From assembly GCA_004764695.1 (NCBI GenBank), contig SMSO01000032.1, positions 3,318,483 to 3,382,482 on the forward strand: a stretch of 64,000 nucleotides of DNA, read 5' to 3'. Made by a program: the position numbers and the translations under genes. This stretch comes from Schizochytrium sp. TIO01. Its lineage: Eukaryota; Protista; Bigyra: Labyrinthulomycetes. Numbering within the stretch: position 1 is the stretch's first letter; each line of letters starts with the position of its first letter. This document shows positions 8,756 through 47,738 of this stretch, one piece after another. Under the pieces are notes generated by a model, which saw nothing but the letters and a program-made list of their open reading frames with translations, did not search any database and was not told where the DNA came from.

Positions 8756-11700
8756 TTATGCATCGTCTGTGATGTTGCAAATGTTGCTAATGACCTCATT
8801 TGCAATGCTTCGCAAACCCACAGAGTCTGAGTAAACTTGCAAATCTTCCACGCCGGCAAGCATATCACTTTTTTTGCTCACACCAATGCGAACTAAGACA
8901 AGATACACGTCGTCATCTGTTCCAATGATGCCATCTGGACCTCGGCGAATAGAAGCTGCAGCATCCTTCGCGCAACCCTTGGGGCTCTTCCGAAAACCTG
9001 CTGCGTTACAACCTGTATTTTTGTTTGGATTTCCGTCAGTTAGAAGGATCGCAACGCGTCGGTCTAAACCTGCCCGTACTGGGGTATTCCAAAAGACTTC
9101 ACTAGCGCTAATCAATGCAGGGCCTGTAGCTGTTCCCGTGTGATAGGCTTCAATTTCTGAAACTGAAGTCTGGAAAGTTTCCTGATCGATCGCTCGAGCA
9201 TCAGTAAAGTTCCACAATATGTTCACATTTGAAGCGTAATTGACAATTGCGAGACGGGAATCAGCAGCTCCAGAACCAACCTGAAAGGCGTAGCTCAATT
9301 GACGCAAAAACATGATAAGATTTGCCCACTCAGTTGAATCGATAGATCCAGAACTGTCCACAATGTACATCACATCATTTACTTTGGGTCCACACGAAGT
9401 TACCGGGGGCGGGGTCATCAGGGTTGGGCTAGGGGTCGGCGCCGAGGTCGCTTCAATGACTGATCTGCATGCCTCAGTTTTCTTACCAGCAAAAAAGTAT
9501 GCATTCGCTGTCCTCTTGGCTCCACTGTAATTTTTGCGTAAATAGCATTTCTTCTTGTTGGAAAGGTATACCCAAACCTCGCATGCGCTTGCGTCAAAAC
9601 AAGCTTCTCCGCAAGCTTTTGCAGTTCCTACCTTGGTGAGGGTTTTGAATGTTTCACCAGGGTAGTTTACGAATTGCGCAAAACATTCTGATTCGTCACT
9701 ACAGTCTTGAGATCCCGAATAGTAGCCTGACTGTCCAGTCTTTAATTTGTATCCTTTTGCCTTCAATAAGCACATGCTTGCAGCAGAATTCCAGGTGTAA
9801 CCAGTGCACATTGTAGTCTCTGTGCACCAAGAATAACAGGCCTTTGCTGAGGTGATTCCTGATGCGCTCTTGACGGTTTTGCCTCCTACATACTGGTACC
9901 CTTCAACAGCACAGTCAAACGTTGTCGGGGCAGCTGTGGAACTTGAACTTGGAGACTCCGTGTCACCTGCAACATTCGTTTGAGTGGGAGCAACTGTTGG
10001 GTTTGCAGTTGGTGAATCGGACGGGTTTGCAGTTGGCGAATCAGTCGGGTTGGCTGTTGGTGAATCAGTCGGGTTGGCTGTTGGCGAATCAGTGGGATTT
10101 GCAGTCGGCGAATCAGTCGGATTAGCAGTCGGCGAATCTGTCGGGTTGGCTGTTGGCGAATCTGTCGGGTTGGTTGTTGGTGAATCGGTCGGGTTTGCAG
10201 TCGGTGAATCAGTCGGGTTGGCTGTTGGCGAATCTGTCGGGTTGGTTGTTGGTGAATCGGTCGGGTTTGCAGTCGGCGAATCAGTCGGATTGGCAGTCGG
10301 CGAATCAGTCGGGTTGGCTGTTGGCGAATCAGTCGGGTTGGCTGTTGGCGAATCAGTCGGGTTGGCTGTTGGCGAATCAGTCGGGTTGGTTGTTGGTGAA
10401 TCGGTCGGGTTTGCAGTCGGTGTATCAGTCGGGTTGGCTGTTGGCGAATCGGTCGGGTTGGCTGTTGGCGAATCGGTCGGGTTGGCTGTTGGCGAATCAG
10501 TCGGGTTTGCAGTTGGTGAATCAGTGGGATTTGCAGTTGGCGAATTAGTGGGATTTGCAGTTGGCGAATTAGTGGGATTTGCAGTCGGCGAATTAGTGGG
10601 ATTTGCAGTCGGCGAATCAGTCGGGTTGGCTGTTGGCGAATCAGTGGGATTTGCAGTTGGCGAATCAGTGGGATTTGCAGTTGGCGAATTAGTGGGATTT
10701 GCAGTCGGCGAATCAGTCGGGTTTGCAGTTGGTGAATCAGTGGGATTTGCAGTTGGCGAATTAGTGGGATTTGCAGTTGGCGAATTAGTGGGATTTGCAG
10801 TTGGCGAATTAGTGGGATTTGCAGTCGGCGAATTAGTGGGATTTGCAGTCGGCGAATCAGTCGGGTTGGCTGTTGGCGAATCAGTCGGGTTTGCAGTTGG
10901 TGAATCAGTGGGATTTGCAGTTGGCGAGTTAGTGGGATTTGCAGTTGGCGAATCCGTCGGGTTGGCTGTTGGCGAATCTGTCGGGTTGGTTGTTGGTGAA
11001 TCGGTCGGGTTTGCAGTCGGTGTATCAGTCGGGTTGGCTGTTGGCGAATCGGTCGGGTTGGTTGTCGGCGAATCAGTCGGGTTGGCTGTTGGCGAATCTG
11101 TCGGGTTGGCTGTTGGCGAATCAGTGGGATTTGCAGTCGGCGAATCAGTCGGGTTGGCTGTTGGCGAATCGGTCGGGTTGGCTGTTGGCGAATCAGTCGG
11201 GTTTGCAGTTGGTGAATCAGTGGGATTTGCAGTTGGCGAATTAGTGGGATTTGCAGTTGGCGAATTAGTGGGATTTGCAGTCGGCGAATTAGTGGGATTT
11301 GCAGTCGGCGAATCAGTCGGGTTGGCTGTTGGCGAATCAGTGGGATTTGCAGTTGGCGAATCAGTGGGATTTGCAGTTGGCGAATTAGTGGGATTTGCAG
11401 TCGGCGAATCAGTCGGGTTTGCAGTTGGTGAATCAGTGGGATTTGCAGTTGGCGAATTAGTGGGATTTGCAGTTGGCGAATTAGTGGGATTTGCAGTTGG
11501 CGAATTAGTGGGATTTGCAGTTGGCGAATTAGTGGGATTTGCAGTCGGCGAATTAGTGGGATTTGCAGTCGGCGAATCAGTCGGGTTGGCTGTTGGCGAA
11601 TCAGTCGGGTTTGCAGTTGGTGAATCAGTGGGATTTGCAGTTGGCGAATTAGTGGGATTTGCAGTTGGCGAATTAGTGGGATTTGCAGTCGGCGAATTAG

Positions 11701-12808
11701 TGGGATTTGGAGTCGGCGAATCAGTCGGGTTGGCTGTTGGCGAATCAGTGGGATTTGCAGTTGGCGAATCAGTGGGATTTGCAGTTGGCGAATTAGTGGG
11801 ATTTGCAGTCGGCGAATCAGTCGGGTTTGCAGTTGGTGAATCAGTGGGATTTGCAGTTGGCGAATTAGTGGGATTTGCAGTTGGCGAATTAGTGGGATTT
11901 GCAGTTGGCGAATTAGTGGGATTTGCAGTCGGCGAATTAGTGGGATTTGCAGTCGGCGAATCAGTCGGGTTGGCTGTTGGCGAATCAGTGGGATTTGCAG
12001 TTGGCGAATCAGTGGGATTTGCAGTTGGCGAATTAGTGGGATTTGCAGTTGGCGAATCAGTGGGATCTGCAGTTGGCGAATCAGTGGGATTTGTAGTCGG
12101 CGAATCAGTGGGATTTGTAGTCGGCGAATCAGTCGGGTTGGCTGTTGGCGAATCAGTAGGATTCGTTGTCGGAGACTTTGTAGGGTTCGCAGTTGGCGAA
12201 TCAGTCGGGTTTGTAGTTGGCGAGTTTGTGGGGTTTGTAGTCGGCGAATTTGTAGGGTTTGTAGTTGGCGAATCAGTCGGGTTCGCAGTCGGGGGATCTG
12301 TAGGGCCTGCAGTTGGAGACTTTGTAGTTGGTGAAGACGTTGGCGCATCAGTTGAACAAGATTTATATGCAGAAATCCAGTCTCTTGAGTTTGTTACTTG
12401 ATTGATCACGGTATAGATATTACATCTATAATTGTTGTTGCCATTGTCAAAGATTGACCATCCAAGACATGTGCTCTGATTTTGACATATATCGATGCAT
12501 TGCTCTTGTGTTGTTGTATCATACGAATCAAATGTTCCGGAAAACTTTTTTGCAGACCAGCATGATGTATTAATTGTAGTCAGATGGCGAGATGGTGGAG
12601 AGGGATGAGTTTGGAGCGAAGCAAACTGCGACTCACTGTGATCATCAGATCCCAAATTCCGAGGCTTTTCATGTCCAAGTTTTCGAGCATTTGTAAATCC
12701 TGCCCATAGAATTGCTAGAACAATCGTGCAAATAAAACTATAGCGTGACGAAAGCAAGTTACTAGAGTCACGTCGAGGCACTCCTGCATTCCTCAAAGAG
12801 GATTGCAT
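8756..12808 (-). CDS. Paralogue A: signal peptide/anchor, PAN, ~790-aa (SPTANPTD/N)n stalk, PAN, PAN, VWA
   Basis: In-frame ATG at 12808. Hydrophobic YSFICTIVLAILWAGFTNA. Apple-type Cys pattern (CIDICQNQSTCLGWS..CNIY; CYSWCTETTMCTGYTW..CLLK; CGEACFDASACEVWVY..CYLR). VWA with MIDAS DVMYIVDSSGS, TGTATG, LLTDG. No C-terminal TM or GPI signal. Confidence 0.9.
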   Translation of the reverse strand: MQSSLRNAGVPRRDSSNLLSSRYSFICTIVLAILWAGFTNARKLGHEKPRNLGSDDHSESQFASLQTHPSPPSRHLTTINTSCWSAKKFSGTFDSYDTTTQEQCIDICQNQSTCLGWSIFDNGNNNYRCNIYTVINQVTNSRDWISAYKSCSTDAPTSSPTTKSPTAGPTDPPTANPTDSPTTNPTNSPTTNPTNSPTTNPTDSPTANPTKSPTTNPTDSPTANPTDSPTTNPTDSPTTNPTDSPTADPTDSPTANPTNSPTANPTDSPTANPTDSPTANPTDSPTANPTNSPTANPTNSPTANPTNSPTANPTNSPTANPTDSPTANPTDSPTANPTNSPTANPTDSPTANPTDSPTANPTDSPTPNPTNSPTANPTNSPTANPTNSPTANPTDSPTANPTDSPTANPTDSPTANPTNSPTANPTNSPTANPTNSPTANPTNSPTANPTNSPTANPTDSPTANPTDSPTANPTNSPTANPTDSPTANPTDSPTANPTDSPTANPTNSPTANPTNSPTANPTNSPTANPTDSPTANPTDSPTANPTDSPTANPTDSPTANPTDSPTANPTDSPTANPTDSPTTNPTDSPTANPTDTPTANPTDSPTTNPTDSPTANPTDSPTANPTNSPTANPTDSPTANPTDSPTANPTDSPTANPTNSPTANPTNSPTANPTNSPTANPTNSPTANPTDSPTANPTDSPTANPTNSPTANPTDSPTANPTDSPTANPTDSPTANPTNSPTANPTNSPTANPTNSPTANPTDSPTANPTDSPTANPTDSPTANPTDSPTANPTDTPTANPTDSPTTNPTDSPTANPTDSPTANPTDSPTANPTDSPTANPTDSPTANPTDSPTTNPTDSPTANPTDSPTANPTDSPTTNPTDSPTANPTDSPTANPTDSPTANPTDSPTANPTDSPTANPTDSPTANPSDSPTANPTVAPTQTNVAGDTESPSSSSTAAPTTFDCAVEGYQYVGGKTVKSASGITSAKACYSWCTETTMCTGYTWNSAASMCLLKAKGYKLKTGQSGYYSGSQDCSDESECFAQFVNYPGETFKTLTKVGTAKACGEACFDASACEVWVYLSNKKKCYLRKNYSGAKRTANAYFFAGKKTEACRSVIEATSAPTPSPTLMTPPPVTSCGPKVNDVMYIVDSSGSIDSTEWANLIMFLRQLSYAFQVGSGAADSRLAIVNYASNVNILWNFTDARAIDQETFQTSVSEIEAYHTGTATGPALISASEVFWNTPVRAGLDRRVAILLTDGNPNKNTGCNAAGFRKSPKGCAKDAAASIRRGPDGIIGTDDDVYLVLVRIGVSKKSDMLAGVEDLQVYSDSVGLRSIANEVISNICNITDDA
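9990..12345 (-). repeat. Coding 24-bp tandem repeat (SPTANPTD/N) with higher-order blocks
   Basis: Variants of gttggcgaat(c/t)agtgggatttgca repeated over ~2.3 kb. The sequence lines starting at 10381 and 10981 are identical. Confidence 0.95.
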
Positions 12809-13271
12809 TTTCAATAGAGTCAGGTCTCTATCTGCCGGGCTCGGCACGCTCTAGCTATTTTAAGGGCAATGTTCAATGTCTTACTACGTTTGTCCGGGTT
12901 TCAACAAAAGGGTTTTGATATCTCGAAGGGCAAACTTGGTCCTCTAATACTGTTCTTGCTGATACCACATAAAGTGTAGCGTTATTAAATAAAGAGACCT
13001 GATACAACAATAAGGTTTATCGAACACTTTATCATCATTCCTTTTTCCAGGAGTTTTGCTCTGCATCAGGTCCATGTTTCAGATCTTGTTTGGTGCTGAG
13101 GCGCTTTGTTACAAGGTTTAGAACACCACATCAAAGAATCTTGCAGTACCTTGTGCGATCGGTATCATCATCGATCTTGCTTATGTCCAAGTTTATCTCT
13201 ACTCAAATGACGACTAATTGAATATTCGAATGGATAATTATTTAGAATGTTAAAAACAGTTAGCAATGGTT

Positions 13272-13295
13272 AAAAAAAAAAAAAAAAAAAAAAAA
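13272..13295. repeat. Poly(A) tract
   Basis: Run of >20 A. Confidence 0.8.
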
Positions 13296-15760: not shown

Positions 15761-18079
15761 TTATCTACTCTCGTCTTCACAAATGGCGCTTATGATTGTA
15801 TCTGCAGTATCAAAGATATCATCAACGTTGGTGCTGATCAAAAGATTCTCCTTGCCCTGGAAAAGCTTCACCTGCGGTTTGTTACCCATCCGCACATAAA
15901 CAAAAAAGATATCGTCATCAGTACCAGAAACACCATCTACGCCAAGCATAAGGTCCTCACCGGCTTCTCTGGCGCACTTCAGGTTGGACTTCGGATACCC
16001 GTTTTCTTTGCAGTCCGTATTTTGGTTCGGTTTACCATCAGTCACAAAGATGACAACCCGCTTGTTAATCCCTTCGCGAACAGCCGTGTTAGCAAAAACA
16101 CCCTGGGCAGCGATCATTGCTGCTCCGATAGCTGTGCCAGTATTTGCATCATCTGAACTGGCTACCGCCAGCTGAAAAGCATCTTGGTCTGTTGCTTCAG
16201 TCGCAGTAAAATCCCATTCCAAGGTTGCAGAAGAAGAAAACCTCATGAATGCCAGACGGGAATCCGTGGCTCCTGTACCAATTGTAAATGCACTTCCGAG
16301 CTGACGTGTAAAGATCTTCATATTGTTCCACTCCTTGCTATCGGTGGAGCCAGAACCGTCCATTACAAAGAGAATATCATTAGGGGTAGTTGCGCCACAT
16401 GAAGATACCTCGGGAACTGGAGATAAAGTAGGCGCAGACGTCGACGTTCCTGCGGCATCGATACAATCCGATGCAAGACCAGCGTAGAAGTACGAGGTCT
16501 TTGATGATGAAGCCAATGACGGGTTTTCGTATAAGAAACAAACGTTTTTCTTTGAATTAAATGTCCAAGCTTCACATCCGGAGTACGAAACACAATTATC
16601 AGCACAATCTGCCGCACTGGTCACGCCGGTAAGCTTGCTCAGTTGAGTTCCAGTGTACTCTGCAAACTGAACCTCACATTCTTCACTGCGGGGACATGTG
16701 ACAGGACCAGATGTGTAACCCTCTTGGCCGTTCTTCATCTTGTACCCCTTTTTCTTGAGGAAGCACTTTCCATTATCCTGGAACGTGTACCCCTCGCACT
16801 CGTCTGCATATGCAGCGCATTCGGTTTTACACTCAGCGACGCTGCTCATACCAGTAACTGTCTTGATAGTTTTCCCGCCGTAGTATTTTTGACCAGCATA
16901 TTCACAACTTGACTCTGTGCCAGCGCCGCGGTCCTCAGTTGGGCTCTCGGTAGGGCTCAAAGTTGGGCTCTGAGTTGGGCTTTGAGTCGGGCTCTGAGTT
17001 GGGCTTTGAGTTGGGCTCTGAGTTGGGCTTTGAGTTGGGCTCTGAGTTGGGCTCTGAGTTGGGCTCTGAGTTGGGCTTTGAGTTGGGCTTTGAGTTGGGC
17101 TCTGAGTTGGGCTCTGAGTCGGGCTCTGAGTCGGGCTCTGAGTTGGGCTCTGAGTTGGGCTCTGAGTTGGGCTCTGAGTTGGGCTTTGAGTTGGGCTTTG
17201 AGTTGGGCTCTGAGTTGGGCTCTGAGTCGGGCTCTGAGTCGGGCTCTGAGTTGGGCTCTGAGTTGGGCTCTGAGTTGGGCTCTGAGTTGGGCTCTGAGTT
17301 GGGCTCTGAGTCGGGCTCTGAGTCGGGCTCTGAGTCGGGCTCTGAGTTGGGCTCGAAGTAGGGCTCTGAGTCGGGCTCTGAGTCGGGCTCTGAGTTGGGC
17401 TCTGAGTCGGGCTCTGAGTCGGGCTCTGAGTTGGGCTCGAAGTAGGGCTCGAAGTAGGGCTCTGAGTCGGGCTCGAAGTAGGGCTCGAAGTAGGAGCATC
17501 AGTCAGGTTTCTCCATTGAATGTTATCAATGGAGGCATAAGCAGGCGGGTACGCGGTCTCCGCTCCACCAACGTAAACAGGTTCAGACTCATTCACGTAC
17601 AGAAGGTAATTGTTTGACGCTGTTGTGTAGTCAATCGTGCAACCAAGGCTAGAGTCTCCATTGATAGAGAGTGTGGCCTCTTGCTCATTGCGAACTTCGA
17701 TGTCGATGTTGTACGACTGTCCAAGTTCTAACACCAGAGCTGTGTCACATCCAGAGTTAGAATTCGTGTTTGTTGAAGTACGAAAGCGGAGCTGAGCTGT
17801 CCCATCATCTACGAAGATGCCAGGTTGACGAACATACTTGCCGTTCCGTATAATGCCACCTCGCTGAAGGATACTTTGCGGGGCAGCGTCGTACGTATCA
17901 TAAATCGTCAAGTCAAAGTTCAATCCATAGTTGGACAAAAGGGTGAGCCCTTCGTCAACAATTTCTCGATTGAGAGATGGTGTCGCGGTAGGTGCTGGGG
18001 TTGCGACATCCTCCGCAATTGCTCGACACCCAAGTGCTACAACGACAGCGAGAATGGCTGGCCATCTAAACGACGTCAT
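15761..18079 (-). CDS. Paralogue B: signal peptide, ConA/LamG-like jelly-roll head, (SPTQ)n stalk, PAN, PAN, VWA
   Basis: Signal MTSFRWPAILAVVVALGCRAIA. Beta-rich head RQPGIFVDDGTAQLRFRTST..GCD..LELGQSYNIDIEV..LSING..PVYVGG..ASIDNIQW. VWA DILFVMDGSGS, TGTAIG, FVTDG. Confidence 0.9.
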   Translation of the reverse strand: MTSFRWPAILAVVVALGCRAIAEDVATPAPTATPSLNREIVDEGLTLLSNYGLNFDLTIYDTYDAAPQSILQRGGIIRNGKYVRQPGIFVDDGTAQLRFRTSTNTNSNSGCDTALVLELGQSYNIDIEVRNEQEATLSINGDSSLGCTIDYTTASNNYLLYVNESEPVYVGGAETAYPPAYASIDNIQWRNLTDAPTSSPTSSPTQSPTSSPTSSPTQSPTQSPTQSPTQSPTQSPTQSPTSSPTQSPTQSPTQSPTQSPTQSPTQSPTQSPTQSPTQSPTQSPTQSPTQSPTQSPTQSPTQSPTQSPTQSPTQSPTQSPTQSPTQSPTQSPTQSPTQSPTQSPTQSPTQSPTQSPTQSPTQSPTQSPTQSPTLSPTESPTEDRGAGTESSCEYAGQKYYGGKTIKTVTGMSSVAECKTECAAYADECEGYTFQDNGKCFLKKKGYKMKNGQEGYTSGPVTCPRSEECEVQFAEYTGTQLSKLTGVTSAADCADNCVSYSGCEAWTFNSKKNVCFLYENPSLASSSKTSYFYAGLASDCIDAAGTSTSAPTLSPVPEVSSCGATTPNDILFVMDGSGSTDSKEWNNMKIFTRQLGSAFTIGTGATDSRLAFMRFSSSATLEWDFTATEATDQDAFQLAVASSDDANTGTAIGAAMIAAQGVFANTAVREGINKRVVIFVTDGKPNQNTDCKENGYPKSNLKCAREAGEDLMLGVDGVSGTDDDIFFVYVRMGNKPQVKLFQGKENLLISTNVDDIFDTADTIISAICEDESR
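16935..17500 (-). repeat. Coding 12-bp tandem repeat (SPTQ)n
   Basis: tgag(t/c)tgggctc-type 12-mers, >40 copies. Confidence 0.95.
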
Positions 18080-19139
18080 TGTAGAGGTGACTTATCCAAG
18101 CCAAACTAAAGAGGTCGCTTCTGTCAGCCGTGCAGCAGGTAGAGTGAGAGAGTTAACAGACTCTCTCAAAGTACCAAGCCTACGATTCTAGATCACAGCA
18201 AGTACCTCTGGACTATTTTGGTTTTGCTTTTGCTTTTCTGCAAAGTTGTCTGCAGCAGCGTAAATATGAAGGAACTACTTCCTTTTTGATTTAAAAAAAG
18301 GGAAGCTGCGTCAATATGCCGAGTGTGCACGGTGACTAAGCAATAGTTATGAACCAGAAAATGTACCATAGGTACGTACGTGACAGCTCAGTTCTCTTTA
18401 TGGTCCAAGGACATAGGACCTGGCGTGGATTCGGCCCCGTCTGGGACTTTGAAAGGCCCAAGGTTGCCTATCCTGTCCTGGCCTTCAGGAGTCCGCGCCG
18501 TAGAACCCTTATGTCTTGGATGCCCGAGATTTGGGCCGCTCTCCTAGTCTCGCTACAAAGAAGTAATTTCACATACGTAGGCACTTTACTTAGGAAGTAT
18601 TGTCCACGGCTAAGAGTTTAGAAAACATTTAAATTTTATCTTCGATTTTTTTAATCAATTTAAATTAAAAATTACAAGTTTTTAAAAAAAGGACAACATG
18701 TAATTCACGCGCATGCAAATTTGTACAATAAGGTTAGTCGACACTTTGACCGTACCTTTGTAACAACCTCTGGCGCGGCCTGAGTTCATCAGCCCTAGCT
18801 CAAATAGAAGCTTTAGGGTAGCTTATCGTCAGCTGCAATCCGTGTCCCGGCGGTGGATCCGGTGAAGATCCACAACTAAAAAGGTTGTAGATGCAAATTG
18901 TAGCGCGTGCTTGCTTATGCGCTTTTTAGCATGGCTTGCAGCGCCAACCTAGAGCCAGGACAGAGCACTCTTCAAGCTGGAAGATAGAGTGTGGCTAGCT
19001 AGCTAGCTACTTGAATGCTTAAGCTCGGTGCTGGACCTTGTAAAGCTTAGATTTTTCGTCGGCACCTTGATATGATTCTAGTTCTACCCCAGTCAGCCTT
19101 TGGACATTGAAGTTCATATTGTAATCAGCCAAGTAGTGA

Positions 19140-19915: not shown

Positions 19916-19957
19916 TGGCGGCTCTAGTTCTCTCCCTCCAACAGAAAGTGTCTGTGC

Positions 19958-20238
19958 ATTAACTAATTCATGGATTCACTAATTCACTAATACATTAATG
20001 AATTAATTCATTAATTCATTAATTAGTGAATTAATGAATTATTTCATTCATTCATTCATTCATGAATTCACTCCTTCATTAATATCATGAATTCACTCCT
20101 TCATTAATTCATTAATTCACTAATTCATTCATTCACTAATTCACTAATTCATTCATTCATTCATTCATTATTTATTAATTCACTAATTAACTAACTCACT
20201 AATTAACTAATTCACTAATTCATTAACTAATTAATTCC
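19958..20238. repeat. Degenerate AT-rich (ATTC/ATTA/ACTA)n simple-repeat tract
   Basis: ~280 bp of attcattcattaattcactaatt variants. Confidence 0.9.
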
Positions 20239-28900: not shown

Positions 28901-29724
28901 CAACCGAATTTCTAGAGCATCGCACGCCGCCAAGTTACATGAAATAACTACGAGATTGGACGTCACGAGTTGCTTTATGTTATGTCCTTCTCGATTTTAA
29001 GGACCTCCTAAACCATTTCGTAGATCATTAGGACTCTCTATGAGCTTAATGATCATCTATGAGGGTGTATGGCAAGTCCTGAAACGGCAGATGTTGAATC
29101 AAGACGTTTGTTTCCAATCATGACAAGGCTGGTTTCCAGTGAATTATGCTGAGCATGCTTCTCAGATTTCCTACTATCACCTAAGTTGGTTCATCCATAC
29201 GGAGAGTTCCTATCCATCTTGGCCGTCCTGGACTTCAAGTCTCCAGCTTAGGAGCTCCCTTTTGGAGTCTCTATTCCGGACTCCAAGTCAACGATTTGCC
29301 ATCTCTCTTGTCCTTGGGGACGTTCTTGAACACGTCCTTGGGATCCTTAGCTGCCGTCCTCTTCTCTTCTTCTACCTCTCTACTCATGGATTGGTTGCTA
29401 GATTGTCGAATATGAGACCTGAAGCTCATTTTATCCGATGGGCTAAATTTTTGAAATTAATTGTTTATGCAGTGGAGATAGTATAGACAGCACGAGTAAG
29501 GCGTGTGGAGTTTTTTTAAATTTCTTCCTTTTTTTTGGCGGGGGGGATAGGGTAGTCTTAGAAAACGGAGAGAAGGTTTTATAGATATCATTTTAAAAAT
29601 GAATTTGCTCAAGTCAAATCTACTACGTATGTTATGCAGTATCACAGAAACTAAATTGTTTTATTTTTCTCCTTTACAATCTTATATCTATCAAGATTTC
29701 TGAATGTCAGATTCTGGCTAGATT

Positions 29725-37200: not shown

Positions 37201-37363
37201 CAGATATAGACCCCTCAATCTAGTATTCTAATAATAAGGACGTTTCGCGTGTATCAATGAAAAAAAAAAAAAAAAAAACTTAAAATATCGTATGTGTCAC
37301 TCCGCAGCTTTTGCATAATTGAACCACGCATGGAATTTTTAAGCTGGTTTATTCTTGCTATAT

Positions 37364-38638
37364 CTATGCACCTGCAGGGGGTTCGCTTTGAACCCTTTTG
37401 TTGAAAGGAAATCTACCTTCAGGATTAATAGCAAAACCACACACCCGTTTTTTGCCATCCTTTGGAAGGAGCTCTGTCCGCTTTAAGTTGATATCGTGAT
37501 GCCACTGGGCCCAGCAAGTAACACGTTGAGATGTCGAGTTACGGAGTTGCTTATGCAAAGCAACGGTACATATATCACAAGTCTGAGCAGTGGGCTCTCC
37601 ACACATAACGCAGCGCTTCTTCTTCCCTTGAGCAAGCGGAATGTCTCTGTGGAGGTTTGATGAAAGCCGGAGCTTTCTCAAGTCCATAGTGTTGGCTGCA
37701 TTGAGAATCCTACGGCGAGGAACTTTCTGTTGCAACCTATCGATCTCGTCATCCCCCAGAGGTCTAGACACCAAATTGTTTGTGGGTGGCAACATATCAA
37801 CGGCATCAGCTCCGTGTGGGTTTAAAGACTTGTAACCAAGCTGTATCAAGTCCAGTGCTAAGGCACTCCCAAAGGTGGAGAGTGAACCAACTTCTCTGCA
37901 GCTTTCTTCGTATTTCTGGATCCCCTTCCATCGAAAGCTTTCATCTAGCACGACCACTTGAAAAAGTCGCCATAATCGAAACGAGGTGCCTAATGCTTCG
38001 ACAATCTTCTCAACCGTTGCCTTTGCCTCAAACGTAATGTGAATATCACCACTAGAAAAACTATCAATATCAGCTTCTGAAGAAAATAAAACTCTTTTTT
38101 CATCATGAAGCCTTACAAATCCCTCTCCAAGGACCTCGCGCGATGAAGCAAAAAAATATGAATCTAGTTCACGAAATCTCGCAGCATTCTCAGCCACCGA
38201 AGCGTGACGGTGCTGTGGAGGTTCTCCCATGATTGGCTCTGAACCTCTCAGATATGCCAGCAGCTCGTCAAAACGGGACACGGTAAGCAAGTGGCTAGTT
38301 TGACCCAACCGTTTCCACGCAATATAACTTTCCAGTACCTCAAAACTCAGAGCTTTCCCTTTTCGATCAAATAAAAACCAAATGAGCATGCCTAGCCATG
38401 TTGTAAACTCCCCCTCGGATACAGGCTTAATCTGGTTGATGTCTAAGCAGTTCATATTGGTACAGCGCATACCTTGATTCATCCACTTGATCAGGGCACA
38501 GACAGCCACATTGTCGACCACAAAAAGAAAGAATTGACCTGGGCTGATTGCCTGCGGATCCGTGAAGCCCGCGACGTACAGTTTCTGTTTAAGTTTTGCG
38601 GCAGCGCGCTCAATTTGGATTTTGACCTGAGTGCTCAT
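37364..38638 (-). CDS. piggyBac transposase-derived protein with N-terminal region and C-terminal Cys-rich domain retained and catalytic core largely missing
   Basis: ISPGQFFLFVVD..WMNQ, VSEGEFTTWLGMLI and VSRFDELLAYLR match piggyBac N-terminal motifs. RCVMCGEPTAQTCDICTVALH..CWAQWH matches the piggyBac CRD. Only 424 aa, with no DNxF/Y or GGVD motifs and no TTAA-flanked TIRs seen. Confidence 0.7.
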   Translation of the reverse strand: MSTQVKIQIERAAAKLKQKLYVAGFTDPQAISPGQFFLFVVDNVAVCALIKWMNQGMRCTNMNCLDINQIKPVSEGEFTTWLGMLIWFLFDRKGKALSFEVLESYIAWKRLGQTSHLLTVSRFDELLAYLRGSEPIMGEPPQHRHASVAENAARFRELDSYFFASSREVLGEGFVRLHDEKRVLFSSEADIDSFSSGDIHITFEAKATVEKIVEALGTSFRLWRLFQVVVLDESFRWKGIQKYEESCREVGSLSTFGSALALDLIQLGYKSLNPHGADAVDMLPPTNNLVSRPLGDDEIDRLQQKVPRRRILNAANTMDLRKLRLSSNLHRDIPLAQGKKKRCVMCGEPTAQTCDICTVALHKQLRNSTSQRVTCWAQWHHDINLKRTELLPKDGKKRVCGFAINPEGRFPFNKRVQSEPPAGA

Positions 38639-39643
38639 GGTTTTTTACACAGCCTCTGGTCGCTTCTGTTCAAAGACCGTGAATATACAAAGAGTTGAAA
38701 ATCGGCAGTTTCTAGGCAGACAGCTCCAGACCGATCAAATCACCACTAGGCAATGGACTTCCCAAGTTTGCTCGAGGGTCTCAGAAGAAGGAAGCGAGCA
38801 GGTCCTGGCTAGCTCTGCTGTAGCTTGTGGGTTGAGTTGAACCCTAGGCGCTGTCCTCAGATGGCGCCTCCAGCCACAGTTCCAACGAAAGCAAGAGCGC
38901 CCTAAGCCAACGAGAGTACAACAGTCTTGGCGATCAATCTGATTTGCCCTGAAAGCAACAAGCCTTCCGAAAGGCCTCTCCCAAGCCCTGAAGACGGTAT
39001 CAAAGCCCCCGACACAGATTGTATAGTTTGCGCCGAGGGTTGTGGGTTTCTATTAAACTTAAAAAAATAGTAAGAAAGAAGGAAAAGGGAGAGGAAAAGC
39101 ATCATCAATCATTGATATATAAGTACCATCAAAAGGCAACCTCTTAAGCTAAATTATAGTAATGAGATAAACCACTACCGTGGCTGCTGGAAAAAACCAG
39201 ATTAGTACTACTGCCTATTACCTTGGTCACTTTCAGGGGGAAACGCTGAGGGCAAAATTAAGGGATTTCGTTGGGGAAATTTGCAAGAGCAATGGTTTAG
39301 AAGGCCTGGAGGAGTCTAGGTGTTGCGCAATAAAGCTGAAGGACAGGCTGGTATTGCTCGGTGTGCAGACTGAAGTGAAGTTGGGATGTGGTGGTCCTTA
39401 GCAGATGCGGTGTGAGAACAATCTCCACAACGTAAAGGTGAAATGTATTTTCAAGGGCTTCAAGGCAGGCAAGGAAACCGATGCGACGGCTGTCAACAAG
39501 AAAAATCATGTGGTTGCTCGAACAGGATTGGAGAAAAAGATTTTTTCAATTGTAAATGTCTATCTTTTGAATCTAGAACATAGGAGTACGAAAGAAAATG
39601 TGATGACAAATACTTGCTTGGTGCCGGCAAGCTACCAATTAAG

Positions 39644-41377
39644 TTAGTCCTCGATGTCACAAAGTTCACTGATAATATAGTCACCAACATCAGTAATGAC
39701 GTCAGGGTAGGTGTCAACGCGAAGGTCCTCCAAATTTCCAAAAAGGTTGGTTTTGGCCTTAGTACCGACACGAATGTACGCCAAGTAGACGTCGTCATCA
39801 GTGCCTTCAATGCCGTCAACACCCTTGCGAAGATCCTCGGCAACCGACTTGACGCACTTCTTAGCGTTAGTAGGATATCCATTAGCCTTGCATAAAGTGT
39901 TCTTGTTGGCTTTTCCATCTGTGAAAATGATGGCGATCCTCCGAAAGAGACCAGTGCGCACTGCAGTCTCCTCGAACAAATCTTGAGCTGTTATCAGAGC
40001 TGCACCAACACCTGTTCCTGAGCTCGTATCCTCGAGTGCATCGACAGCAATACTAAATTTAGAGAGGCTTGTTGCGCGCGAGTCGTCAAAGCCCCATACA
40101 AGAGTGGCATCGGAATCAAATTGAATCATAGCGAGACGAGAGTCTTCTTCGGTACTCCCAAGCTGGAAGGCGCTTCCAAGTTGCCGAACGAAGTTTTTCA
40201 CCATTTCGAATTGTTTGCTATCAATCGATCCAGAGCTGTCAAGAATGAAAACAATGTCATTGGCACGTGAAGAACATGACAAAACCGAGGCGATAGGAGA
40301 CATGGTCGGAGCAGACGTGGGGGCATCTGTTGTGGGAAGCCCATAGGAAGCACAGTCAGATTTAGTACCAGTAACATAGTATGCGTTACGTGACTTCGCT
40401 TTGGTGCTTTTTCTGCGCAGGTAGCATGTAGTGAGGTCCGTGCGGTAGGTCCAAGTGGTACAAGGCGAAAGATTATTGCACTCCTGAGCGCACTTTGCAG
40501 CTGACTCAATGTCATCCATAGTGAGCAAAGTGTCACCTCCAATGTAATCTTTGAATTGTACTTCACATTCATCATCGAGAGGACATTCGCGAGGGCCGGA
40601 CGTGAATTTGTCTTGGTTTGTCTTCATTACGTAATTGTTTTTTAGAAGCTTACATAGCCCATCTTGTCTCCATGTAAAACCTTCGCACGCTTCATAGGCA
40701 AGACACTCGTCGTGGCAATCTTCCGCATTGCCAACCTTCTTAATCGATTTCACCGTCTTGCCTCCTTTGTACATCACATCTTCAGTGATACAATATGTGC
40801 TGGAGCTTTTGTCACTTGTTGGAGCATATGTTGGGCTGTCTGTGGGAGTGTTAGTTGGCATGCTAGTGGGGGTCGATGTTGGGCTGAGCGTAGGGCTAAC
40901 TGTCGGCGACGCCGTGGGTGCTACACTCGGGTGGAGGGTGGGCGAGCTAGTTGGGCTATCCGAAGGGCTCACCGTGGGTGTCATAGTAGGGGAAAGGGTT
41001 GGCGCTTGCGTACAGTACTTCGGGCCAGACGTGCATTTGCTATAGCCAGAACCCGACTTTTCAGCTGAGATGGAGATAAAGAGTCTGCAGTAGCCAAAGA
41101 CGAGGTCAGAATTGAATGTCCAATGTTGGCACTCCGAATTGTGAACGCAGTGCTCTTGACATTGGCCAACATTGGCAAATAGTAGATCCAAAAGAGTCAA
41201 GCTCAGAATGATCTTGCTCGAGTCATCTTGCTCGTACATAGTATTCTCCTTGTAGCAGCTTGTATCAGAGGAAGTCGGATATGCTGTTGATGATGTTAAG
41301 GAGCGATCCCCGTGTACAGTCGCAAGCATTGATAAAGCTAGGATAAGACATGTAGCCTTCAAACCATGGAGGTTCAT
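39644..41377 (-). CDS. Paralogue E: signal peptide, PAN, short S/T/P stalk (~65 aa), PAN, PAN, VWA
   Basis: Signal MNLHGLKATCLILALSMLATVHG. PAN CQEHCVHNSECQHWTF..CRLF. VWA DIVFILDSSGS, SGTGVG, IFTDG, GVDGIEGTDDD. Confidence 0.9.
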   Translation of the reverse strand: MNLHGLKATCLILALSMLATVHGDRSLTSSTAYPTSSDTSCYKENTMYEQDDSSKIILSLTLLDLLFANVGQCQEHCVHNSECQHWTFNSDLVFGYCRLFISISAEKSGSGYSKCTSGPKYCTQAPTLSPTMTPTVSPSDSPTSSPTLHPSVAPTASPTVSPTLSPTSTPTSMPTNTPTDSPTYAPTSDKSSSTYCITEDVMYKGGKTVKSIKKVGNAEDCHDECLAYEACEGFTWRQDGLCKLLKNNYVMKTNQDKFTSGPRECPLDDECEVQFKDYIGGDTLLTMDDIESAAKCAQECNNLSPCTTWTYRTDLTTCYLRRKSTKAKSRNAYYVTGTKSDCASYGLPTTDAPTSAPTMSPIASVLSCSSRANDIVFILDSSGSIDSKQFEMVKNFVRQLGSAFQLGSTEEDSRLAMIQFDSDATLVWGFDDSRATSLSKFSIAVDALEDTSSGTGVGAALITAQDLFEETAVRTGLFRRIAIIFTDGKANKNTLCKANGYPTNAKKCVKSVAEDLRKGVDGIEGTDDDVYLAYIRVGTKAKTNLFGNLEDLRVDTYPDVITDVGDYIISELCDIED

Positions 41378-44300
41378 CTTGCTTTATACAAGCGAGTATA
41401 GAGGAGGGCTTGTTTAATTGGTGGTACACGGACCGTACTAAAGCTAGCTTGACAGTTGAAGATGTCGGAGGTTGGCGAAGGTGTATTATGGGTTTGGTTC
41501 AAGACGTTTTGGGCCTCTCCACAATTTTATATTCTCATTTTAAAAAAGAAATCGTTGTTTCCTTATATCTCTTATATCTCCCTCTAATTTGTGGGTGGTG
41601 GATTCTGACAGCTTATGGGCAGTAAAAGAAAGAAAACCTAATTATATTCGACTCTTTCGGGAACATCAAAACAGGGAAATTGTTAGTCAGAACAACTTTT
41701 CTCTTCATGCATCGTTTCGACGCGGGATCGTGTTAAAGAATAGCATGAGATAGTACATTACTATGTCGAGCGGCTCTCTAGACACTTGGCCTCTAGAGGC
41801 AATTGTGCTCCCTGTTGGGACATTATGTAACTGTCTTTTGGAGAGAGACTCAGCAAACACTTTTTTTAAATTAAATTTTGTATACCTCGTTTCCTTATTT
41901 TCGTTTCTTCCCAAAGTACCATATAGTATTCGAATACAAGACGCCTGGGGTTTCCTAGATTCTAGCCACCTGGCAGGTACTTTCATCACTATTTGTTTAT
42001 TTTACGGCCCGCCTGTGAGGAAAACGCAATGAGCATGTTTTAAAAAGCTTGCTTAAAAATTTGAACTAAAGAAAATCGATCTCTGTTTTCTATGTATCTA
42101 AGAAGACAGATACTCGTATTCTATTGAATTGATGAACTGATATAGTACCGCATAATGCAGTCCCGAATACAAGAGCTAACCTGTTTTGAGGGAGCACAGT
42201 TAGAATCAAACCCTTGAGGGGACGGCTGAATTCGTGGCAAGTGACATCAGCTTGTGGGCTTGCGACCCTTGAAATCCAGTTTTTGACGACACTTTTAGAC
42301 TTATCTAATGCAAGATCGTGCATCAACTGGGCTGGAGACTGACGCTGACCTAAACATGTACCATACTTTTAAAAAAGAGGTGAAGTTGTAATGCGTATTC
42401 ATTGTAGAATGGGTTCAGAGTTTTCATTCAGTGGGCACGCATCGATTTTTTTTATTTAAGTATAAACTATTTCAGACTACAAATATTTGAGGGCTCATCG
42501 AACAGGAGTTATGCGATTCAAAGAAGCGACGTGTTTACAGCAGCAACTGCGTATGTATCTGAATTCCTGTTGAGATATGGAGCTTACCCCTCAAAAAGCT
42601 AATCGTGTCGAAGGATTGGCATATTAGTTTGGGCCCTTCTACCAACTCATAGAATCTACCCCTAATTTGTTGAGAATTAGCTGCATCAGGTAATGCCAGA
42701 AGCCAAGCTTGGCATGACACGTAAAGAGTATTCTTGAATTGCACCACAAGGTTAGAAACAATATCGTGTATCCGTCGAAAAATAAAAATTTGTCCAAGAT
42801 CAAACTCTCCAAACTTTATCCAGGCTTTGTTTTGTACGGACCGAGAGGCATTAGAGATCTTACCCTGCACGCGCTTTCTCAATTATGCAGCTTATCGTTC
42901 TGCTGGCGTTCGGAGGACACAGCACATACAACTCACTTGTATAGTAACCGGTGCAAAATAAGATAAATTGAGACCGTCTCTGCAACTCCGAATTCGCTGG
43001 ATAAATTTAGTACCAAGACCACAAATACTGGTTTTGGAGGCCTTGATCCGCAAAGTCGCTGAACATTCGCTAATTCCCTTGTTTAAATGAGGAAAACCCC
43101 TCAAAATACCATACGCTGAGCTTTGTGGCATAGGCAATGTCCACGAGGCTCTACAAAGCAATTGCGTAGCCTGGAGCCTCCGTGCTGTAATAGCGGAAAT
43201 AATTCTTTTTTCAATTCTTTATTCAATTCTTTATAGCGTTGTGACTTGGTTTGTAGAACTCAGTTGTTCCATTGTCCTTTCATGATTTATTGTTTAGGTT
43301 TTCATCGCATACTTTTTTTCCAGCACTCAAAATTCTCTAAACGTTAAGGAGTACAAACTTCGTTCTGTAAAGGAAACTCAGAGAAATGATATTTGCAGGT
43401 CAGCTCGGAGGAATGCATTCAGTTACTTATACTGCGAGTACGTTTTAGACTTTCCTACAAGTCCCGAGGAGTTTCAATATAGGGTAGCAATTATTCCTTT
43501 TTAGATAGACCGTGCAATCTTCCTTCAAGTGGCATCTTTTAGGTTTAGAAGAAGCAACTCAGGGTCATTTAAGTTTTTAATTCTGAAACCTGGGAATCAG
43601 AAATTCTCAGCAGGCTTGCTGTAGACGTGACCAATCGCGCGGATCGTTGCTTTGATAGTATACTCCATCGCTCCATGATACTTTGAAGTAACCGACATGG
43701 AAAAAAGCTTCCCTCCACTGTATTTTCATCAAGTCCGTAGCTTCAGAGTGTCCCATTTCTTCAGTTTCATCGTATCTCTCATTCGTCGACATCTTTACTT
43801 CGAGCAAGATAACGCGAATCTATCTCTGTATAGGATTAATTATGCGTCTTGTTGCGGACCGCGAAAAGCTCTATGAAGCCAATACCTTAAGGAAGAACCA
43901 AGCTCTATGCTTTGATAGAATAAGGCGAAGGCAGGGGTTATTACAATAACATTGAAATGCCTTCCAAATCACGTGTTGTTTCTCAGAGAGAATGATCTCA
44001 ACGACTTCTGCCCTTTCAACACTTTTGGTTTTTGCTTACTTTGTTCATCTTTAAAATCATTTTTTTCTTTTAGTAAGAATGGCTAATAAAGTTACCTAGA
44101 TAAGAGCAAGTTGATATTGAAAGGCTTAATTACAATTGCTTCTTTCTGCTAGTAAGAGTGAATGTCAACTGTAAACAAGCAAAAGGAAATCAAAGCTATA
44201 GATTTAGGTTGTTTCGTATATTTCTTCAAACAAAGCTCGAGGTAACACGGATTCTGGTCCAACAAGTAAATAAGTCCCGTACCTAGCTAAACGTGGCAGG

Positions 44301-46432
44301 TGTACTCCAACTGATCCCTCCGTGGTGCACCTGTGAACCTTAACAAATACGTGGAAGAATCCAATAGTTCAAAGGCGGACAGCACGCGTTTGCTTTTGTT
44401 CACTGAGGCAGGTCCCAGCTCAAGTAGCCAAGGAACACCTGTGAAGTAACTAAATCGTCCAGTTGGTCAGGTGCGTCAACCCCCTCAAGTTCTGGCTACC
44501 ACGTTGGTCCAGGCTTCCTGGACCCTGGTCCTTATAAGAGACGAACGAGGAGTGAAAGCAATATGCGAGATTGACCAATGGGTTTGTGTCACGTAAGGAG
44601 TCCAGCCTTTGGAGCTTTCACGCAAGCGACGCAGTAGCACTTTGAGACGCAACCTGTCAGTTAAATATTCGAAGAAAAGGTTTTGATCCCCCCGAATAGA
44701 TTTGAAATTGTTTCTCGCTAAACTATCTCAACAGAGTTCCTTGGGAGTTGAAAGAAGTCCCATCCCACTGCCCCTGGCCGGCCTTAAATACCTCGATCAC
44801 TGGCACGGCCGAGTCTCTCACGTTTCATATTCCATCTCGGTCCGGTGCTGCATGTGCAAACAAGTGTCAATGCTTCATGACGTGTTCAGAGAGGTGATAA
44901 GCTTGAATGCAATCGAAAGTAAGCCTGGAGAACGAGACTAGGCTACGAGTCGATTAATGAGGGAGTTTCTCTTATAGTCTCATCACTAGTCCTTGTTAAT
45001 TCAATTAATTAATTAAAAGTTAGTTCTCAATCTAGCACAGTGCCATGGGCCGCTCTTGAAAAGCTGACCTATTCTGATGGTACGCTTTTTTACTGTCCCG
45101 TGGCGAAGTCCCGAAATCGGGAAAAGAAATATAGACCCAGTCAGTGGTAGGTAGTAAAGAATCGAGTAACATATCTCGCGCGTACATTGCTGGTACAGAA
45201 ATTCTATTTCACGCCACCACTAACTAAAACTAGACTAATAATACCTTGGAAATTCTGTTGTTTGACACTCGGTCTTTCATGTCTTTCAAAGAGTTGAAAT
45301 GCGGCAGATGTCTCATAGAAGGAATTCTATGGTAACACCTCTGCCTACCAATAGGTAGTGTATCCTTTTGCAATTAATTTTTTACAATAAAAATAAGGAG
45401 AGAAGGTTATATGTAGTTATTAAATTAGGACAAAGGTATTACTATAGAATCATGAGCAAATCATTACTGTTGTGCATTGACTTGAACGCCTATCTTAGTT
45501 GAGCAATTGATATGAATACTCTTACTACTATTTAGACTAGCGAGGATGAGAGGAAGCGAAGAATATAAAGTAGGTTCTAGTTTAATATCTATTACTAGTA
45601 GTTTCTGTGCTACAATTTAGCACTTCAGTGTATGTTTAGCAGTATTAATTCTTTCTTTCTTTTGGTATCATGGAAAGACAATCTCCATCTTCCTGGCTTT
45701 GCCCATTATTCACAAAACTAAAACCTCTTTCATAATTATTATAATATATTTTGATTTCTTCGTTTCCACTTGGTGAATTTTTAAGACTCAACCTGATTAT
45801 TTTTGAACTGGGCATAACTTTTTTTTGTAGAAATATTTTCACAGATAGAATCACAATGAAGACATCAGTGAATTAATCATCAGGAGATCTTACTAACTAT
45901 AATATACAATAATATAGCGGATGTTTTGAAAGTAAAGTCCGGCTTAGGACAAACTGTCCTCGGTTGATAATTAAAATAAAAGAGCTGCTCAAGATCTTTA
46001 ATGGAGTGGTTAAGATGCATGTCCATTCTATCTGCCTGCGCTGCCTATAAGTTTTGCTGAAAACTAGAGACTTTAAACATAAGTACGGTCTTCATTGGGA
46101 GAACGCCAATGAGAATAATTACACGTGTTGCACTGGATTTGAACCTCAAACTAACAAATTTATTCTTGATTCACTGTGTGAGAAAATGAACCGCTTGAGA
46201 CTCATTAGAGAATGTATGATTAGACATCGCAGTATCAGCTTGAGAGTGATTAAAGAAAGGTTGGCCCAGGCATATTTCCCAAGACCCGAGTAATTAGTCT
46301 TATAAAGTATTGATAGAGGACACTTTGAACTCTTGAAGAACAAGAAAAGCGAAATCTTCTCTAGTGTTGATCACTGCATGCCAATGCAACGTCGCAGAGT
46401 TCGATAGTTTTCAATATTAAGTTCCAGATTCT

Positions 46433-46541
46433 CTTAGGCAGACTTAATTCTGATAAAGTAGACAACTCTGTACTTAGGCAGTCCTAAAGTCGACAACTCT
46501 ATATTTAGGCAGACCTAGCTTTGATAAATAGACAACTCTAT
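46433..46541. repeat. Three imperfect tandem copies of ttaggcag...taaa(g)tagacaactct
   Basis: Visible directly; the middle copy is shorter. Lies just downstream of paralogue F. Confidence 0.7.
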
Positions 46542-46667
46542 GAAAGAAGAAAACATGAACTTAGAATTCAATGAGAAAGAAGAATCAGGGGTATCACTTC
46601 TCGGCCAAAACAAATTCGCGGTAGAATGAAGATTTTATAAAACAGTTAACCAAGAGAAGAATGATGT

Positions 46668-47738
46668 TTAAAGGTCGCAGATTGAATCAACGAGTGTGTT
46701 AGCTGTATCCTTAAGATCTGCTGCTGAAGACTGAACAAAGAGAGAAGTAGAATCGTCAAGAAACTTCTTAGTCTTGGAGGTACCGATTGAAACAAAGATC
46801 AATGTAACATCATCCTCAGTTCCTGCAACACCATCTGCACCATTCACGAGGTCCTGTGCTGCAGCAGACAAGCATTTAGCAGAGTTCGATTTGTATCCAT
46901 TGCTAGCGCAGTAACCGTTCGAGGTAGACCTGCTGGAGGAAATGAAGATAGCTGTACGCTGAACATTTTCACGAACTTGAGTTTGGGCAAATAGGTTCTG
47001 AGCATAGATGAGACCACCAGCAAAGCTGCTCTTGGACGTGCTGAACAAAGAGAGGTCATCCGTGGCATCCTGAAATTCAGTCATATCGGTTGCCTCAGAT
47101 TCTTCAAAGGTCCATTCAGTAGATGCGTCGTCAGCAAATTCGATCATAGCAAGGCGAGTGGCGTTGGAACCGAGCTGGAATGCGCTACCGAGCTGGCGGA
47201 TGTAATCCTTAGTATAAGTCCACACAGAGTTGGATTGCGATGATGCATCGACAATAAAAGCAATGTCATGGGCCTGCTCTCCACAGGAGTCAACAGGGTC
47301 AGTGTACATAGTCGGGGCCCCAGACGTGGGGGAGGGGGTCGGGGTCATAGTAGAATTAAGGAGCTCGCGACGCAAATTATCCTCAATGTCGGGGCAGTCA
47401 CGCTTTCCTGAGTAGAATCCAGGGCGGTTTTCAATCGCATAGATTTGCTCGTCTTCAAACAAGATGCAAACATCTTGTGCGCTGTCTAGAAAAGTCCAAT
47501 CAGTGCAATAAGCATTAGCATTACACAATGTGTAGCAGTAGGAGTAGGTCACATGCTCAGTTTTATCAAAGTAAAATGTTTTGAGCACGATACCTTCGTA
47601 TTGTACATTTTCCTCAAAACAAGACGAGGTCGGGGCACTTGTAGGCGCAGCGGTAATGTTGGTGCCATTTACAGATGCAGATACGCTTACCACAAGTAGG
47701 CTAGCGACAAAACCAACGAGTCGAGATGCAGTGTGCAT
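46668..47738 (-). CDS. Paralogue F: signal peptide, single PAN, short linker, VWA with degenerate MIDAS
   Basis: First in-frame ATG at 47738 (MHTASRLVGFVASLLVVSVSA). PAN CYTLCNANAYCTDWTF..CILF. VWA DIAFIVDASSQS; the MIDAS T and TDG positions read SSF and ISSS; GADGVAGTEDDV is kept. Confidence 0.88.
   Translation of the reverse strand: MHTASRLVGFVASLLVVSVSASVNGTNITAAPTSAPTSSCFEENVQYEGIVLKTFYFDKTEHVTYSYCYTLCNANAYCTDWTFLDSAQDVCILFEDEQIYAIENRPGFYSGKRDCPDIEDNLRRELLNSTMTPTPSPTSGAPTMYTDPVDSCGEQAHDIAFIVDASSQSNSVWTYTKDYIRQLGSAFQLGSNATRLAMIEFADDASTEWTFEESEATDMTEFQDATDDLSLFSTSKSSFAGGLIYAQNLFAQTQVRENVQRTAIFISSSRSTSNGYCASNGYKSNSAKCLSAAAQDLVNGADGVAGTEDDVTLIFVSIGTSKTKKFLDDSTSLFVQSSAADLKDTANTLVDSICDL

Follow-up and report, generated by a model that had tools for sequence, protein, structure and literature searches.

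What kind of protein does a tandem run of six large, related genes in the labyrinthulomycete Schizochytrium sp. TIO01 encode, and what would such proteins be for? The genes (A–F) lie within positions 8756–47738 of a window of 64,000 nucleotides, this being the whole stretch of DNA analysed (contig SMSO01000032.1 of GenBank assembly GCA_004764695.1, forward-strand positions 3,318,483 to 3,382,482). Labyrinthulomycetes are major marine decomposers and producers of docosahexaenoic acid, yet next to nothing is known of the molecules on which their attachment, scale wall, and ectoplasmic net depend. A settlement proteome study from 2025 went as far as naming candidates (PMC12221091). Here, we find that the cluster encodes a lineage-specific architecture assembled from ordinary, well-known domains, in the main a variable head, a mucin-like stalk, and a constant tail of two PAN/Apple domains and one von Willebrand factor A (VWA) domain, and that the same genome holds many modular families of this sort. 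The products of genes A–F are probably secreted extracellular binding proteins. The window is eukaryotic in type, with long intronless open reading frames (ORFs) of 46–53% G+C and AT-rich spacers between, and the six co-oriented paralogues described in the initial annotation were recovered as six intronless minus-strand ORFs where it had placed them. Their layout is given below, with PT denoting Pro/Thr-rich sequence and MIDAS the metal-ion-dependent adhesion site of the VWA domain.

Gene A, 8756–12808, minus strand, 1350 aa counted from the first ATG: signal-peptide-like N-terminus, 12686–12808; divergent PAN head, 12314–12562; PT stalk, 9944–12313 (790 aa, 24-nt unit repeated 95.5 times); PAN1, 9698–9928; PAN2, 9467–9694; PT linker; VWA with intact MIDAS, 8768–9400.
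Gene B, 15761–18079, minus strand, 772 aa: predicted signal peptide; laminin-G-like head, 17501–17983; (SPTQ)n stalk, 16931–17500 (190 aa, 12-nt unit repeated 45.8 times); PAN1, 16691–16921; PAN2, 16463–16687; VWA with intact MIDAS, 15770–16402.
Gene C, 24124–25902, minus strand, 592 aa: predicted signal peptide; laminin-G-like head, 25321–25803; 13-aa linker as stalk, with no repeat structure; PAN1, 25051–25281; PAN2, 24823–25047; VWA, 24130–24765, with AEG in place of the MIDAS TDG.
Gene D, 29725–34209, minus strand, 1494 aa: predicted signal peptide; PAN head, 33802–34038; compound PT stalk, 30886–33801 (972 aa, periods of 12/24/108/132 nt); PAN1, 30661–30882; PAN2, 30430–30657; VWA with intact MIDAS, 29731–30363.
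Gene E, 39644–41377, minus strand, 577 aa: predicted signal peptide; PAN head, 41009–41266; PT stalk, 40808–41008 (67 aa); PAN1, 40580–40804; PAN2, 40352–40576; VWA with intact MIDAS, 39647–40279.
Gene F, 46668–47738, minus strand, 356 aa: predicted signal peptide; single PAN, equivalent to PAN2, 47391–47630; linker; VWA with MIDAS lost, 46671–47288.

Foremost among the shared features is the C-terminal cassette of PAN and VWA domains, which had been proposed as common to all six paralogues, and indeed both domain types score in Pfam, with F having one PAN only. The VWA domain (PF00092) was detected in 6/6 proteins, with E-values from 1.2e-14 to 9.1e-20 and scores of 55–72 bits against a cut-off of 23.8 bits, while PAN_1 and/or PAN_4 of the cassette exceeded the gathering score in A–E. 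For F, the Pfam search returned PAN_4 only (E-value of 1.3e-3), and the PAN2 model of its paralogues, a family hidden Markov model (HMM), matched with an E-value of 1.3e-26. When the C-terminal ~385 residues are aligned, they form one conserved cassette of PAN1, PAN2, a short PT linker, and VWA, with pairwise identities of 33–60%. In this alignment, F is without PAN1, and its sole PAN corresponds to PAN2, with 6/6 cysteines kept. Moreover, every one of the eight aligned rows keeps the six cysteines of PAN2, and the seven rows that have PAN1 keep the six of that domain, and an acidic GxDGxxGT(D/E)DD loop is conserved in the cassette as well. Another four invariant cysteines are located in and around the VWA domain, these being one in an SCG motif just before the domain, one in an ICD motif at its end, and the CxxNGYxxxxxxC pair, which sits after the TDG strand. 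The SCG/ICD pair suggests an N-to-C disulfide clamp like that of VWF A1/A3.

With regard to the MIDAS, the DxSxS...GT...TDG motif is complete in the alignment for A, B, D, and E, and also for four family members outside the cluster (the G-type copies, described further below). In C, TDG is replaced by AEG, and in F all three elements are lost, the corresponding positions reading DASSQ, KS (no GT), and SSS (no TDG). Given this degeneracy in C and F, not all members can act as metal-dependent binders. Structural modeling of the cassette with AlphaFold (AF2) gave a predicted local distance difference test (pLDDT) value of 78 overall, which is higher in the domains, with the VWA part reaching block values of 76–94. 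The closest structures identified by Foldseek were extracellular adhesive VWA domains, namely those of TgMIC2, PfTRAP, the mussel byssus protein PTMP1, VWF A1/A3, and integrin I. Here, the VWA fold gave template-modeling scores to target of 0.79–0.83 against the VWF A1, TRAP, and integrin I domains, with E-values down to 4e-13. Similarly, in a profile search of protein data bank (PDB) sequences, the VWA part matched collagen VI alpha3 (4e-46), PTMP1 (8.6e-20), and MIC2 (~2e-11), and the whole PAN pair matched the two-apple structure of MIC4 (4a5v; E-value of 3e-13, profile positions 4–131), as well as Sarcocystis SML-2 (2yil) and Eimeria MIC5 (1hky).

The heads of the paralogues differ in domain type. 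PAN heads had been assigned to A, D, and E, and this held to varying degrees: the head of D is a clear PAN (PAN_1, 27.3 bits in Pfam), that of E falls below the threshold (PAN_4, 23.5 bits), and that of A is weak and divergent (E-value of 0.2 in Pfam and 5.6e-4 with the family HMM), with a C..C..C..W..C..C pattern common to all three. As for the ConA/LamG-like head called in B and C, the Pfam Laminin_G cut-off was not reached by B (E-value of 0.006, 17.5 bits versus 22.9), and no Laminin_G match in Pfam was found for C. Nonetheless, the modeled fold bears out the call. An AlphaFold model of the B/C head, built with 14 paralogous copies of the domain from other loci in the same genome, has a pLDDT of 91.7 and displays a laminin-G/LNS/pentraxin-type beta-sandwich. 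In fact, structural alignment with VIA-align gave a Z-score of 14.1 for laminin alpha2 LG5 (rmsd of 2.9 Å over 144 residues), 13.7 for agrin G2, and 13.5 for perlecan LG3, while Foldseek placed the head in the ConA-like superfamily (E-value of ~3e-6), CBM40 and pentraxins being among the folds matched. On account of these matches, the assignment is right at the level of the fold.

Between head and tail, the stalks are 62–76% Pro+Thr+Ser, and their computed lengths of 13–972 residues agree closely with the range of ~10 to ~950 aa that had been estimated. The PT repeat family of Pfam (PF04886) matches A with an E-value of 4e-118 and D with one of 2.5e-55, and by Pfam and tandem-repeat analysis the stalks show the long Pro/Thr/Ser tandem repeats that define a mucin type. 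The proteins are probably heavily O-glycosylated. In a Kyte-Doolittle scan, all 19-residue hydrophobic windows above threshold (A, B, E, F, and the G-type copies) were N-terminal, and C and D had no window above threshold. The same scan found no hydrophobic C-terminal tail in A–F, and hence neither a transmembrane (TM) nor a glycosylphosphatidylinositol (GPI)-like tail, as the initial annotation had also maintained. Read by eye, the N-terminal hydrophobic stretches come with small residues where cleavage would be likely, with A having an unusually long n-region of 23 residues. Since the Kyte-Doolittle heuristic is the basis here, we infer secretion, and the proteins would be soluble, as suggested by an N-terminal hydrophobic segment combined with no anchor.

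We then consider how these proteins compare with known extracellular systems. Apple domains of the apicomplexan MIC4/SML-2 type are galactose-binding lectins, and the PAN pair of the cluster resembles those of coccidian MIC4, SML-2, and EtMIC5 in having six cysteines per domain and in matching 4a5v over its whole length. Unlike the coccidian lectins, the Apple pair here is fused to a VWA domain and a mucin stalk, and there is no microneme context or escorter partner. The likeness to TRAP/MIC2 lies in the MIDAS-type VWA, this giving the closest Foldseek matches, and in the (predicted) extracellular location. In contrast, the cluster proteins lack a thrombospondin repeat (TSR) in Pfam, a TM helix, and a cytoplasmic tail, and their VWA is C-terminal rather than N-terminal; on sequence grounds, they are not members of the TRAP/MIC2 family. 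The best VWA sequence matches are to matrix VWA proteins of metazoans (collagen VI, matrilins, VWF A1/A3) and to the mussel byssus protein PTMP1, and the flanking cysteines suggest a clamp of the VWF A1/A3 kind, although the cluster proteins are without triple helix, coiled coil, EGF, or D domains. Specifically, no collagen domain was found in Pfam for the cluster proteins, and no Gly-X-Y region is visible in the sequences, that of their Hondaea relative (see below) included. The oomycete CBEL and the mucin-like adhesives of zoospores and cysts, which stramenopiles secrete, adhere by means of PAN/Apple modules or PT-rich repeats. Yet the cluster proteins contain neither a CBM1 nor a TSR array according to Pfam, and CBEL has no VWA.

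To place the cluster within its own genome, we searched the 64-Mb assembly (37 contigs), with other loci read from 3.5-kb pieces. There are ten full family members, these being the six in the cluster and the four G-type copies, located at C13:116080, C19:26358, C3:2294844, and C31:3220894, the last of which is 97 kb upstream of the cluster. The G-type copies are near-identical (98% for the one pair of cassettes compared), although their open frames vary in length (1046–1111 aa) and in stalk. Their head represents a third type that consists of two copies of a ~150-aa domain, for which there was no match in Pfam and no lead in the ESM Atlas. Moreover, they are situated inside segmental duplications that span 10 kb or more and are 93–99% identical, adjoining satellite-like arrays with recurrence offsets of ~385 bp. 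The B/C head domain recurs, among the top rows, at 37–48% identity in ORFs on contigs C6, C3, C30, and C31, and at 31–34% identity on C4 and C34. Other orders of the same modules include VWA-PAN-LamGx3 (C6), PAN-PAN-stalk-VWA (C31, at 5.2 Mb), VWA-VWA-PAN (C30), and PAN followed by LamGx3, and the loci with recombined modules are as follows.

C6:1392399–1411562, recombined modules.
C30:202528–205153, recombined modules.
C31:5186198–5223656, recombined modules.
C30:711296–712516, recombined modules.

Genome-wide, we counted at least 35 VWA matches and 104 PAN candidates. The VWA domains of the loci with other module orders score ~30 bits against the family VWA model, as compared with ~330 for the members, and a tree parts the cluster family from these proteins with support of 90/88. 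By such measures, the cluster family is a distinct subfamily of a large VWA/PAN/LamG/PT repertoire. The view of the initial annotation that this exact architecture is not a described family held up, in that no published description was found; within the genome, the cluster is not a unique architecture, its modules being recombined elsewhere.

Outside the species, we made an exhaustive HMMER profile search against 1.84 billion representatives, which returned 7393 matches, with the statements here covering the best 150 of these. PAN and VWA are combined only in sequences of the same species and in one protein of Hondaea fermentalgiana, the matches being for the most part multi-VWA or multi-PAN proteins. 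The best source-named PAN-only matches are coccidian PAN proteins (Toxoplasma, Neospora, and Besnoitia), and the best source-named VWA-only matches are collagen VI-like proteins from amphioxus and Hydra. The Hondaea protein (GBG29635.1) has 343 aa, an F-type architecture, and a degenerate MIDAS, and because of the VWA alone it carries the automatic name "Collagen alpha-1(XX) chain". As F and the Hondaea protein join the tree as long branches, we do not claim orthology. Word-indexed protein searches returned nothing with C, not even C itself, and only same-species fragments with the cassette profile. With the long G-type protein as query, the sole match was a VWA protein that is not related, and the ESM Atlas gave no cluster with the PAN-PAN-VWA architecture of the family. 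Here, we noticed that the word-indexed database is without B, C, D, the G-type proteins, and full-length A, even for their own species, and for this reason the narrow distribution is provisional and absence elsewhere is weak evidence. Literature searches uncovered no description of a VWA or PAN-VWA family from thraustochytrids or labyrinthulomycetes. A MIC4-like PAN protein is increased during settlement of A. limacinum and was named as an ectoplasmic-net candidate (PMC12221091). The settlement protein A0A6S8AHQ2 is probably not encoded by a cluster gene, as in the supplement text its domain annotation is NA and its MIC4 similarity weak.

As to whether the genes are functional, ratios of nonsynonymous to synonymous substitution (dN/dS, or omega) come to 0.20 in the cassettes and 0.19 in the heads of B and C, and to 0.13 when G-type copies are compared. 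Purifying selection acts on the genes (omega ~0.2), and together with the open frames this rules out pseudogenes. Over its full length, the product of gene E differs at five positions, counted by eye, from a transcript-derived protein of MMETSP0958 (~99% identity, both being 577 aa), which confirms the intronless gene model and transcription. This match and the Hondaea relative place the organism in the Thraustochytriidae, most likely as Aurantiochytrium limacinum or a strain near to it; the taxid in the MMETSP header, 87120, belongs to a fungus and seems to be 87102 (A. limacinum) with two digits transposed. RNA-like contigs from four runs in four studies cover parts of C (24900–25638 and 25830–25974) and D (29719–30880 and 29425–29769), with no such contig in these runs for the 3.2-kb C–D spacer (~26000–29400). 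In the matter of expression, which had been put forward as a check, transcript evidence was found for E and, from the RNA-like contigs, for C and D. Incidentally, the RNA-like runs hold 46–65% of the sampled words in the stretch 39000–48000, of which the coding regions of E and F make up only ~31%, and there may be further transcribed units between E and F. We also observed an TTTTTTAA(A) element common to B, C, E, and F, located 170–224 nt upstream of their ATGs and found in 0/200 mononucleotide shuffles, though this is weak evidence because the context is AT-rich.

The cassettes of the paralogues are mostly 33–47% identical, with saturated synonymous sites and B/C as the exception at 60%, and their flanks show no similarity apart from the 5' side of B and C; as judged from sequence divergence, the paralogues are old. 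The tree resolved only the grouping of B with C and the monophyly of the family. B and C have heads that are 84% identical in amino acids, with a synonymous divergence (dS) of 0.51 in the head versus 1.46 in the cassette. At the DNA level, B (17480–18130) and C (25303–25950) are 76–91% identical from ~50 nt upstream of the ATG through the LamG head, as compared with 58–74% in the cassette. Taken together, the closer 5' part and the lower dS of the head suggest that gene conversion on the 5' side, or an exchange of heads, took place between the two genes at a later time. Transposon-driven duplication was considered and ruled out, as only the coding stalk repeats recur between genes and the ORF at 37364–38638 is single-copy.

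Our preferred reading, to which we assign a probability of roughly 55% based on the sequences and models, is that the proteins have a role in adhesion or matrix cross-linking as two-ended lectin/MIDAS proteins. Each would be a soluble linker with a lectin-type head at one end, a constant tail of Apple pair and MIDAS-VWA at the other, and a mucin-like spacer between. Glycans would be the ligands of the Apple and LamG modules, e.g. those of the wall scales, which are rich in sulfated galactose/xylose, or polysaccharides of the substrate. The MIDAS-containing VWA would use a divalent cation to attach to an acidic ligand, either on a protein or on a surface. How far such a protein reaches would depend on its stalk, which if extended would measure a few nm in C and roughly 200 nm in A and D. 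Such linkers could serve adhesion or hold together the matrix of the wall, coat, or ectoplasmic net, while F, the similar Hondaea protein, and in part C may bind in a metal-independent way or serve as caps or competitors. In view of the galactose/xylose polysaccharide of the wall, an attractive idea is that the Apple pair would dock on the organism's own wall or net with the head and VWA pointing outward, or vice versa. The two-ended cross-linker of the initial annotation therewith fits the domain anatomy, and its role in adhesion, matrix, net, or coat is what we infer. Several points weigh against this interpretation. A uniform MIDAS mechanism cannot, judging from the motifs, cover all six proteins, with C and F being without a full MIDAS. 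Signal peptides were judged by a hydrophobicity heuristic alone, the RNA nature of the four runs is a guess, and the contigs give no expression levels. Moreover, in those parts of the settlement-proteome supplements that were accessible, the cluster proteins were not found (PMC12221091).

Alternatively, the proteins could be structural glycoproteins of the wall or scales, built into a non-cellulosic wall in the manner of extensins or algal hydroxyproline-rich glycoproteins (HRGPs) and having no part in attachment to foreign surfaces. Their PT-rich stalks look like those of wall glycoproteins, they have no membrane anchor, and a collagen VI-like or PTMP1-like VWA is a matrix-assembly module. 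The thraustochytrid wall consists of scales of sulfated galactose/xylose polysaccharide, and the galactose-rich wall polysaccharide could be the Apple ligand (PMC11642839). The variable heads and the extreme range of stalks, however, better suit outward-facing recognition than a uniform building block, and we consider this explanation unlikely; should it prove correct and the proteins be ordinary wall glycoproteins, their wider significance would be modest. A second alternative is that the proteins serve feeding or defence, as secreted capture proteins or agglutinins binding bacteria, detritus polysaccharides, or viruses, and so holding substrate near the ectoplasmic net or forming a mucin-like decoy barrier. 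Lectin-type heads (LamG-like with CBM40 and pentraxin fold matches, or Apple-type), a tandem expansion with diversified heads as is typical of recognition families, and the large genome-wide repertoire would all agree with capture, but at omega ~0.2 there is no sign of diversifying selection at the level of whole domains, and a role of this sort seems rather less plausible still. Two binding ends and a spacer could also bridge two of the organism's own cells, in which case the proteins would be recognition or aggregation factors, serving e.g. as cues when zoospores settle, in holding a sorus or colony together, or in mating. Variation in open-frame length (1046–1111 aa) and stalk among otherwise near-identical G-type copies would be in keeping with this, yet no membrane-bound partner was identified in the analysis, and we view it as improbable.

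Returning to the adhesion and cross-linking role, a more specific version of it can be put forward as a speculative proposal. Here, the proteins would be graded, thraustochytrid-specific tethers, in which the constant tail of galactan-binding Apple pair and MIDAS docks on the scale wall or net and presents interchangeable heads at distances set by the stalk (~3 to ~240 nm). With the repeat number of the stalk quickly evolving, these would make up a layered, multi-specific adhesive coat for settlement and substrate capture. If true, the cluster would be an anchor-free, non-apicomplexan counterpart of the MIC/TRAP toolkit and an entry to ectoplasmic-net and wall biology. Whichever role applies, the cluster offers concrete, intronless candidate genes with defined binding-type modules for labyrinthulomycete adhesion and wall biology, as well as a natural series of stalk lengths, head types, and intact versus degenerate MIDAS motifs. 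It also exemplifies how the shuffling of PAN, VWA, LamG, and mucin modules gave rise to adhesin-like proteins in a lineage apart from animals and apicomplexans, and independently of them.

Lastly, some other features of the window deserve brief mention. One ORF that does not belong to the family intervenes between D and E, and an array occupies the B–C spacer, while three ORFs lie outside the cluster.

ORF at 37364–38638, minus strand, 424 aa: no Pfam match and single-copy; its Cys-rich C-terminal part (residues 293–397) has relatives in two long ORFs of other loci in the genome, at C13:4231087 and C6:2387090.
Array at 19964–20237: 8-nt tandem repeat (TAATTCAT, ~35 copies), which also reads as a 69-nt inverted repeat.
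ORF at 6290–8488, minus strand, 732 aa: RING-variant (RINGv) domain and C-terminal AlgH-like DUF179.
ORF at 58089–59573, plus strand: Ysc84 actin-regulator domain with a long Ser/Asn-rich tail.
ORF at 60258–62186, minus strand: GH30 glycoside hydrolase (Glyco_hydro_30, E-value of 6e-63) with an N-terminal hydrophobic segment.

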